In this document: one piece after another, positions 20,801-24,616 of the stretch
Layout of the letters: the number at the start of each line of letters is the position of its first letter
Numbering within the stretch: the first letter of the stretch is position 1
Origin: Camelus ferus
Taxonomy: Eukaryota
Assembly (NCBI RefSeq): GCF_009834535.1
Contig: NC_045704.1
Location: 43,586,001 to 43,650,000 of the forward strand
Reading direction: 5' to 3'
DNA: 64,000 nucleotides
Made by a program: the position numbers and the translations under genes
Notes under the pieces: generated by a model
What the model was told of the DNA's origin: nothing
The model's database searches: none
What the model saw: only the letters and a program-made list of their open reading frames with translations

Positions 20801-23800
20801 CTGGGTGTGCTGGGCTTCTTCAGGTGAGACTGGGGCTGGACTGGGCAGTGTGGGCTGACAAAGCCAGGACCGTTCCATGACCGCCATCCCTGCCCCCTCG
20901 CAGCACTGGAGACATACATGCAACTGGCAACTGGGGCTACCTGGATCAAGTGGCTGCACTACACTGGGTCTAGCAGAATATCGCCAACTTTGGAGGTGAC
21001 CCTGGCCATGTCACTATTTTTGGCCAGTCTGCAGGTGGCATAAGTGTGTCTTCACATGTCGTGTCCCCCATGTCTCAAGGACTCTTCCACCGTGCCATCA
21101 TGGAGAGCGGTGTGGCCCTACTGCCCAGCTTCATCACCAGCTCATATGATGTGGTCTCTGCAGTGAGTGCCCTGGACTGTGGGAAGCCTGGACTTGCTGC
21201 CCCATCTCTTACCTCTCAGCCTCCATTACTCTGTTAAATGGGGACAAGGACTCCCCTGTCATCAGAGCACCTTGGGAATAGCTGTCTATCCTGGGATTGT
21301 TTCAGGCTTAGAATCCACAGACCTCTACCAGCACAGAGACTGAGTCATTCTGTGGCCCCCAAAACTGACACCCTGGGGGCCCCCATCATGGGCCAGACCA
21401 TCTTGGCAGGTGGGATGGCCCCTCTAGCTGAGACCTCTGAGCATCAGGGAAATCAGAATAATTTCAAAAGTGTAGGAATCCACTCATGATACTCTGTGAG
21501 ATTTGGGGTACACCTGCCTCCAACTGGAGCATCAGGATAACCACTCTCCCTTACCTGGAAGGATGAGCTAGCCCCTACCTGGTCTCTTTATAGATAGTGG
21601 TCAACCTGTCTGCCTGTGGCCAGGTTGACTCAGAGGCCCTGATGAACTGCCTGCGGGGCAAGAGTGAAGAGGAGATTCTGGCCATCAACAAGGTTGGACT
21701 GAATGGGTGCGGGTGTGGAGGAAGGGGGCCCATAGGTGTAGGACAGGCAAACCTGAGTGCCCCTCATACTCCCTGGGAAGGTTACTCTATCTCCACACCT
21801 TGGGGTCCTCACAGCCCTGGATGGGGAGTTAAGGCCAGGCCATGCTAACGCAGGTGTCAGGACCTCCTGGTGTGGGTGTGAGCATCCTGGGATGAGCAAG
21901 GAAGGGGCAGAAGATGTCTGTGGCATCAGAAAATGTCTGCAACTTGACTTTGAGTGCCCCTTAGGCCTTCAAGATCATCCCTGGCCTGGTGGATGGGATT
22001 TTCCTGCCCAGGCACCCCCAGGAGCTTCTGGCCTCTGCTGACTTTCAACCTGTCCCCAGCATCATTGGTGTCAACAACGATGAGTACGGCTGGATCATCC
22101 CCTCGGTAAGGCCCATTCCCAAGCCTCTAGGTGCCGGGATCCCATTTCGTGGGGGAGCCTAGGGATTTCATAGCTCCAGGCTATCCCATCTCCAACTCGA
22201 GACTCCCCCCCACCACCCAGGATTTGATCAAATATGGTACCCAGACGGAAATGAACAGAGAGACCGTGAAGGCTGTTTTGCAGAAAGCATCAACAATGTT
22301 AGTGAGGCTTCTGGGGACCTGCCCCCATGGGAGGGGTTCCTCTCCTCTTCCAAGGCACGGGAAGCCCATCTCCTGGATACCCTGTCCATGCACTACCCCT
22401 GCAGAGCTTGGCCCCTTCCCCTGATTCCTTATCCCATCCCAGGATCCATCTCCCCAGTCCTGACCCTGCCGCCTCCCTGCCCCGGCCAGCCTGCCTAACC
22501 TGACTCTTCCTGATCCACCTGGGGCAGATGTTGTCTCCTGAGATGGGTGACCTGTTGATGGAGGAGTACATAGGAGACAGTGAGGACCCCCTGACCCTCC
22601 AAACCCAGTTCCATGAGATGATGGAAGACTACCTCTTTGTGATCCCTGCACTCCAAGTAGCAAACTTTCAGCGTGAGTACATCTGGAACTAAGGGAAGAC
22701 TGGCAAGGGAGAAACTCAGAGCTGCAGGTAACAGCTGAGGTCTACTGGTGTCCAGGTCCCAGCCCACGTCTGTTTATTGGGCTCAGGTGCCAGCCACTTA
22801 ATATCTTTCATCTTGGTAAATCCTCACGGCTAGTCTAAGAGACAGACATTTATTCCTTTTTACAGATGAGGAAATAGGTTCACTGACCTTCAGTGACTTG
22901 CCGAAGACCATACCTCAGGAAGTTCCAAAGCCACAGTTTAAACCCAGGCCCTTCCCACTGCCCTTGCTCCCGCCTGGGGCTCCCTCGCCTCATTGTCCAG
23001 ATCCCAACCAGCTTTGGATTTAGCTGTGTCATCACCATGGGTAATTCAAGAAAACTCCAGGTGAGAAGCCGCCACGTCATAGCCTGTCTACCCCACCTCC
23101 CCAGGTTCCCATGCCCCTGTCTACTTCTACGAGTTCCAGCATCAACCCAGCTTCTCCAAGGACATCAAGCCAAGCTATGTGAAAGCAGACCATGGAGATG
23201 AGGTTCTCTTTGTCTTTGGAAACCCTTTCCAGGGCCGCTATGGTGAGTCTTCCTGGGCGGGTTTCCTCAGAGGCCCCTCATTCCCAGGATGTGAGTCAGT
23301 ACACTGGCTGAGTCCCTGAGAGAGGGTAATTGCCCTCACTGTACAGATGAGGAAACTGAGGCTCCAAAACAGGACGGGATCAAGTGTCCAAGATCTGACA
23401 GCCAGAAAGACTGAGCTCACATTGGAGTACAGGGCTTTTCGAACAGGGACCTATGCGCCCTCCACCTCTCCCCACCCTGACTGTGGGTATCTGGCATGGG
23501 TGCAGAGGGGGCTGTTTCAAAGGCATATTTGCTTCTTAAATGCCCTTCCAGTATCAGAAGGAAGAAGGGAGCCCTCTGGGTCAGGCCTGAGCCTAGTGTC
23601 AGGTCAGCCAGAGCCTGAGATGAATATATGGGGTTTGGGCGAGGAGAGGGCCTGGGGAGCAGGCAGAGAGCCAGGTCTAGGCTGGCAGGGAGGGGCTGGG
23701 GAAAGCTACACCTGGGATGGTGAGAGTGGTTTGCGAAATGACCCACATGCTGCCCTGGAGCTACCCTGACCAGGACCTTTGTCCTACTGCTCTGTAGTCA

Positions 23801-24616
23801 AAATGACTGAGGAGGAGCTGCTGCTGAGCAGGAAGATGATGAAGTACTGGGCCAACTTTGCTCGAAATGGGTGAGATGTTGCATCCTTACTTTAACCTCC
23901 ACAGTTGAGGGGTGTATCTTGAACCAATCAGGACTCCCTTGTCTGTGGTGACCTCATTAGCATAGATGTCTTTAATTGAGTGGCAGCCCTCTCCCCAGCT
24001 CCAGGACCCTCTTGGACAAAGAGGGGCGTTATGGATGCTGGACACTTATGCCATCCCTGGGTCATCTGGAGGGGAGGTGACAGTGCTATTACTGACAGAG
24101 CCTCCCTCTGTCAGGAAAGAACACAGGCTGCTCTGCCACCTGGTGGAGCTGATGCTCTGGTGGGAGGTAGATTCTTTCCTACTTCTGGAAACCTCCCTGT
24201 TTCATTCCCTAAGCCCTGTTTGGCTGCCTTGCCTGGCCTCAGTCAGGATGTTCGGGTCTGGGCCTGGTAGGGCTCACAGTGACTCTCACACTGCTCCATG
24301 GGTGGGCATGTCTACAGGAACCCCAACAGCGAGGGTCTGCCCCACTGGCCCCTGTTTGACCAGGAGGAGAGCAATACCTGCAGCTGGACATGCAGCCTGT
24401 AGTGGGCCGGACCCTGAAGGCCCACAGGCTCCAGTTCTGGACAAAGACCCTACCTGAGAAGATGCAGGAGCTAATGGAGGCCAAGGAGAAGCACACAGAA
24501 CTGTAGCTTCCTGCATCAGGGGTTGGGGTGTGGGCTTGAGTGCAGGTGGGGGTCTGCCAGAGGTGCCCACACACACCCAGTGAGGAACCAGTAGTTTTTC
24601 CTTCATTTGCATAGCC

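Follow-up and report, generated by a model that had tools for sequence, protein, structure and literature searches.

Two disabling lesions in the otherwise well-kept CES2 gene of a Camelus ferus genome assembly

Introduction

CES2 is the main enzyme of the gut and liver that splits ester drugs, along with some fats. Mammalian CES2 genes, such as those of the 'cocaine esterases' of rhinoceros (P0204), Suricata (P0316), and Bison (P0365), have chromosomal neighbours and a 12-exon structure in common with the gene that is the subject of this study. This gene lies in a stretch of 64,000 nt of the Camelus ferus assembly GCF_009834535.1 (contig NC_045704.1, positions 43,586,001 to 43,650,000 of the forward strand), hereafter the window. 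Like its mammalian counterparts, camel CES2 keeps the codons of the Ser-Glu-His triad, the Cys residues of both disulfide pairs, and a terminal HTEL, and its conceptual protein is 75–80% identical to theirs. It differs in that a TAG at codon 208 and, in exon 12, an insertion of 2 nt break its frame, and in reading GQSAGG at the nucleophile elbow and HGGL at the oxyanion-hole loop.

Two described cases bear on what such a gene would mean. Mice lacking the Ces2 cluster are reported to have altered drug metabolism and metabolic-syndrome phenotypes that were largely rescued by intestinal human CES2 (PMC11845761). A camel null would have its mouse counterpart in this total lack of CES2-type activity; the mouse model is, however, an engineered deletion of eight paralogues. 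Closer at hand, a comparison of all seven camelid species found CES3 to carry an early stop in each of the three Old World camels, yet none in alpaca, counted CES3 among ten confirmed inactivated genes, and read the case as a lineage-specific metabolic gene loss (iScience 2025, PMC12127551). CES3 adjoins camel CES2 and belongs to the same family and cluster; its loss is documented in three Camelus species, whereas the CES2 lesions described here are known from this one assembly.

Results

CES2 was rebuilt as 12 exons spanning 14777–24506 on the forward strand, to which all coordinates below refer unless the reverse strand is named. The gene has no uninterrupted open frame: its coding sequence (CDS) is 1679 nt long (3n+2), and the first stop falls at codon 208. 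The locus is therefore a CES2 gene by descent and not a CES2-coding gene.

The first lesion is a premature TAG at 20971–20973 in exon 5 (20904–21162, 259 nt), where the ancestral codon is CAG. It sits 19 codons ahead of the codon for the catalytic nucleophile, Ser227 (TCT, 21028–21030), which lies in the same exon. Residue 208 is Gln in 23 of 25 other mammalian CES2 proteins and Arg in the remaining two, both from primates, and the codon is CAG in the DNA of Bison, rhinoceros, baiji, and a cetacean-like contig, L001. The two paralogues in the window, CES3 (30271–30273) and CES4A (57067–57069), also read CAG at the homologous codon. An earlier note on this stretch had reported this in-frame stop at codon 208, its position upstream of the catalytic Ser, and the CAG of both paralogues, and the rebuilt CDS bears it out on all of these. 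The same holds for its remark that skipping exon 5 could not rescue the frame, since the measured length of 259 nt would shift it.

The second lesion lies in the last exon (24318–24506), which is 189 nt long in camel and 187 nt in Bison, rhinoceros, and baiji. Alignment of exon 12 showed a clean 2-nt gap in all three outgroups opposite camel GAGGAGAG (24365–24371). The surplus GA/AG dinucleotide falls in AGGAGGAGAGCA (24362–24373), and its placement within the repeat is ambiguous; the earlier note had written the extra AG at 24370–24371, which agrees with our result except that no exact position can be fixed. The shifted frame meets a TAG at 24400–24402, as had been stated. The HTEL endoplasmic reticulum (ER)-retention signal together with the original stop (CAC ACA GAA CTG TAG, 24492–24506) is now out of frame; the signal had been described as still visible at 24492–24503 yet lost, and it was indeed found in the original frame only. 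Lesion 2 looks like a slippage duplication of GA/AG. The two lesions, which are in different exons and of different kinds, are independent of each other, and each is derived relative to every outgroup sequence examined.

Apart from these two sites, the gene model is complete. Exon 1 (14777–14849, 73 nt) holds the ATG, in the context CCACCATGC, followed by a hydrophobic leader resembling a signal peptide (MPLDRLRLWLSAVTFGFLLLVPGQG). Exon 2 (18828–19032, 205 nt) matches the Pfam COesterase family (E=1.3e-19), and is followed by exon 3 (19896–20037, 142 nt) and by exon 4 (20690–20823, 134 nt), which encodes the oxyanion-hole loop HGGL. Downstream of exon 5 are exon 6 (21594–21692, 99 nt), exon 7 (21965–22105, 141 nt), which holds the codon of the catalytic Glu344 (GAG, 22082–22084), exon 8 (22221–22301, 81 nt), exon 9 (22528–22672, 145 nt), exon 10 (23105–23242, 138 nt), which holds that of the catalytic His456 (CAT, 23191–23193), and exon 11 (23798–23870, 73 nt). 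The Ser-Glu-His codons are thus all kept, but all lie 3′ of the premature TAG. All 22 splice sites are AG or GT (22/22), and an AATAAA polyadenylation signal is located at 24761–24766, 255 nt past the original stop, so that the splice sites, signal peptide, and polyadenylation signal are as intact as the earlier note had described them. A run of N in intron 1 (17059–17395) hides no coding exon, all 12 having been placed outside it. Between the original stop and the AATAAA, the 3′ untranslated region contains a (CCTT)n microsatellite of about 14 units (24615–24672).

Where the gene lies, how its exons are arranged, its phylogeny, and its best matches all identify it as CES2. Of seven exon translations, five passed the cut-off for Pfam COesterase (PF00135), with E-values from 1.7e-23 to 5.9e-07 and co-linear profile positions 2–446; a sixth matched below the cut-off. 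For the protein comparisons, a conceptual camel CES2 was used in which the stop was written as X and the two extra bases were omitted, a construct made for analysis only. It was 80% identical to rhinoceros CES2, 79.6% to that of Suricata, 77.6% to that of a dolphin, and 75–77% to those of ruminants; its best matches are labelled 'cocaine esterase', and the nearest solved structures are mouse Ces2c (8AXC) and mouse Ces2e (9G73). In a maximum-likelihood (ML) tree of 26 mammalian CES2 proteins, camel was the basal artiodactyl, sister to the cetacean and ruminant sequences (support 99/99), where a camelid CES2 is expected to belong.

Gene order and exon lengths agree with this assignment. The window reads RRAD-CIAO2B-CES2-CES3, with CES4A also downstream. 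CIAO2B (11724–13522, reverse strand) has five intact exons and stands head to head with CES2, serving as a synteny anchor; RRAD (3726–6292, reverse strand), intact where read, is a second anchor. The Bison, rhinoceros, and baiji loci share this layout, with a Ras-domain gene and an FeS_assembly_P gene followed by CES2, and a further carboxylesterase gene was seen downstream of CES2 in Bison and baiji. CES2 exon lengths are equal in camel and these three species except for exons 1 and 12 (differing from all three), exons 3 and 10 of Bison, and exon 10 of baiji. Exon 1 is 73 nt in camel against 76 nt in the other three, a difference of one codon.

No second CES2-like copy was found in the 64-kb window. 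The interval between CES2 and CES3, about 4.4 kb, leaves no room for one, and the two runs of N within it (25949–26078 and 27206–27357) are too short to hold one. The nearest genomic match to camel CES2 exons 2–6, at 82.7% identity with introns included, was contig L001 (Logan SRR4292264, 3291 nt). We considered it as a camelid paralogue and rejected it because its exon 5 is nearly baiji-like (GASAGG, NIIYFGGDPDH); by its sequence, L001 is best classed as a cetacean-type orthologue.

Outside the two lesions, CES2 showed no sign of decay. In a three-taxon Nei-Gojobori analysis, the ratio of nonsynonymous to synonymous substitution rates (dN/dS) was 0.40 on the camel branch (bootstrap 0.28–0.60), 0.45 on that of Bison, and 0.31 on that of rhinoceros, and the neutral fraction of the camel branch was estimated at 0.03 (−0.32 to 0.38). 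The camel terminal branch in the ML protein tree measured 0.18, the shortest among artiodactyls, compared with paths of 0.24 to baiji and 0.26–0.29 to ruminants. At otherwise invariant CES2 sites, camel has eight unique changes, within the range of 1–12 found in 14 other lineages, and its 27 private residues compare with 7–32 in other mammals. Accordingly, none of the four measures (invariant-site changes, private residues, branch dN/dS, and tree branch length) gave a camel excess indicating relaxed constraint.

Because CES2 is otherwise unworn, with its triad codons kept, a dN/dS of 0.40, and a short branch, its loss is either recent or not fixed, and the missing signal of relaxed selection is what would be expected of a recent loss. 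The earlier note had suggested a recent loss and proposed a branch test of dN/dS; the unelevated ratio and short protein branch fit that suggestion. We assumed that a neutral CDS of 1.7 kb takes 0.3–0.6 disabling hits every million years, a rough rate drawn from the branch dS and general indel-to-substitution ratios. At this rate, two hits suggest an age of a few million years, probably under about 8. Since the rest of the gene is unworn, the inactivation is probably no older than a few million years and belongs within Camelus or shortly before it, and we predict that it falls after the split from llama and alpaca.

Two camel-private residues lie by the active site: Leu149 in HGGL (20705–20716), where others have A, G, or S, and Gln226 (21025–21027). 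They could reflect early relaxed constraint or be harmless variants. The codons CAG-TCT at 21025–21030 encode Gln226-Ser227 in GQSAGG, a motif that is usually GESAGG. The change from GESAGG to GQSAGG was considered as a third lesion and not counted, as dog (G), sloth (A), and cetaceans (A/T) likewise depart from the usual Glu at residue 226. Camel CES2 thus does not carry the GESAGG elbow, and this variation means that the motif does not strictly define CES2.

Other camelid CES2 sequences were sought in several ways. A profile built from three CES2 proteins and the camel exons was searched against 5.8 billion sequences with a length filter of at least 307 amino acids. Among the matches listed there was no camelid CES2 protein, from alpaca or any other species, and no masked entry from the window's own genome; an annotated one would be expected near the top because the profile contained camel exons, and the filter would hide the open reading frames (ORFs) of 207 and about 290 amino acids expected from a broken camel transcript. 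A protein search with the stop-free stretch of exon 5 returned other mammals only, with a best identity of 79–85%, and no camel ORF fragments. Scanning metagenome contigs for host contamination gave nothing above 77% identity and no camel contig, and an exact look-up of the 38-amino-acid exon-12 ORF returned no record. Our literature searches found no report of CES2 loss in camels. The loss is probably unreported; as the lineage-specific loss of a well-known enzyme gene, it is an ordinary kind of finding.

Discussion

We consider it probable that the orthologous, single-copy camel CES2 is a unitary pseudogene that was inactivated quite recently. In this scenario, a C-to-T change would have turned codon 208 into TAG, and a slippage-type GA/AG duplication in the last exon would have thrown the final 44 codons out of frame. 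With 189 nt between the stop and the exon 5–6 junction downstream of it, and seven more junctions beyond, the mRNA would be expected to undergo nonsense-mediated decay. Any CES2 product would end after 207 residues and lack Ser227, Glu344, and His456. Lesion 2 on its own would remove the last 44 residues, HTEL included. Hence no CES2 activity would be expected from this locus.

A working enzyme might still arise by read-through of the stop, RNA editing, or alternative splicing. We found no point in support of this, and it seems extremely improbable. A transcript without exon 5 would be out of frame and would lack Ser227, and translation that read through the stop would still meet the frameshift, which would strip the C-terminal helices and the HTEL retention signal. 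Re-initiation would start at the first in-frame ATG past the stop, codon 241 (21070–21072), and the product from Met241 would have neither the signal peptide nor the nucleophile. As this codon lies beyond Ser227, neither exon skipping nor re-initiation can restore the triad.

Several observations weigh against a unitary pseudogene. Both lesions come from one assembly of one individual, which leaves room for an assembly error or a rare allele, and an intact gene with two consensus errors would equally show no relaxed selection. The 2-nt insertion is within a short GA repeat, a context in which some assemblers err. Our view is limited to 64 kb, and a dispersed duplicate or retrocopy elsewhere could supply CES2 activity. 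The missing alpaca protein in the profile search is hard to square with a loss restricted to Camelus. Finally, the 2025 camelid comparison that records the CES3 loss neither lists nor mentions CES2 in its main text (PMC12127551). That comparison worked mainly with genes 'corrected' by NCBI and, on our reading of its methods, might have passed over any gene that carried a plain pseudogene label.

The view that the gene is intact and that at least one of the lesions arose in assembly or consensus calling has, in our judgement, only a slim chance of being correct. The otherwise perfectly kept CDS and the GA repeat at the insertion would fit such errors, as would the three runs of N in the window, which mark an assembly short of finished quality. 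However, CIAO2B and RRAD, which adjoin CES2, read through cleanly, so that two independent errors of different kinds in a 1.7-kb CDS are unlikely; two disabling lesions in 1.7 kb of conserved CDS are unlike chance in a well-assembled region. The decisive lesion is, moreover, a base substitution, the rarest type of consensus error, and an intact gene would normally be annotated as a protein, of which none turned up. In addition, a stop noted earlier in the CES3 of this window matches in kind, though not necessarily in position, the one published for three camel species. The possibility that the sequenced animal carries real lesions on a loss-of-function allele, or on two alleles that the consensus has merged, with CES2 working in most camels, is also unlikely, if a little less so than an error. 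The rest of the CDS would suit it, having a dN/dS of 0.40, a short protein branch, an intact triad, and no decay. Against it, two hits on one haplotype would imply that the gene had been unconstrained for roughly a million years or more, by the rough rate inferred above, which is beyond the usual segregation of an allele, and no annotated camelid CES2 protein was present in the sources searched.

A copy outside the window, either a dispersed duplicate or a retrocopy, could have kept CES2 function while this locus died, and this we rate as remote as an assembly error. CES2 is multi-copy in rodents, lagomorphs, and squirrels, and our inspection covered 64 kb. However, CES2 duplicates elsewhere in mammals are in tandem between CIAO2B and CES3, an interval that holds one gene in camel, Bison, rhinoceros, and baiji, and the listed profile matches, which reached down to 72–74% identity to the rhinoceros query, included no camelid CES2-like protein. 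A recent loss of CES2 is supported for this assembly and not yet for the species.

If camels do lack CES2 on top of the published loss of CES3, ester drugs would be activated or cleared differently from cattle and horses, with a bearing on veterinary dosing and on residue rules for racing and food camels, and the camel would be a natural model in which to study what CES2 does in metabolism. No such consequences would follow should the lesions be confined to a single animal or assembly. The published loss of the adjoining CES3 makes that of CES2 somewhat more interesting. A far-reaching version, which we regard as doubtful, would hold that Old World camels have lost both genes and with them the part of gut and liver ester hydrolysis that CES2 and CES3 carry out, that this double loss is tied to their unusual handling of fat and glucose or to a diet of toxic desert plants, and that they are a large animal in which CES2 is naturally knocked out, which would bear directly on the dosing of ester prodrugs.

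Other carboxylesterase sequences examined alongside camel CES2 showed peculiarities of their own. In baiji (Lipotes vexillifer; L085, 10001–21372), CES2 exon 10 is 137 nt long rather than 138 nt, which shifts the frame when the gene is spliced on the camel model. Its nucleophile motif reads GTSEGG, and Arg stands in place of the catalytic His (ADRGDE). Compared with the camel lesions, those of baiji are different and more numerous, and they include catalytic residues. In dolphin CES2 proteins, the motif is GASAG or GTSAG, and the C-termini are unusual and do not finish in HTEL. CES2 may have eroded independently in cetaceans, judging from lesions in one baiji assembly.

Within the window, the CES3 exon at 31756–31872, homologous to CES2 exon 7, reads GVNDHKFGWLIPK, with Lys in place of the catalytic Glu. 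CES4A has GQSSGA at its nucleophile elbow (57040–57110), and those of its exons that were found by similarity are stop-free in the aligned parts.

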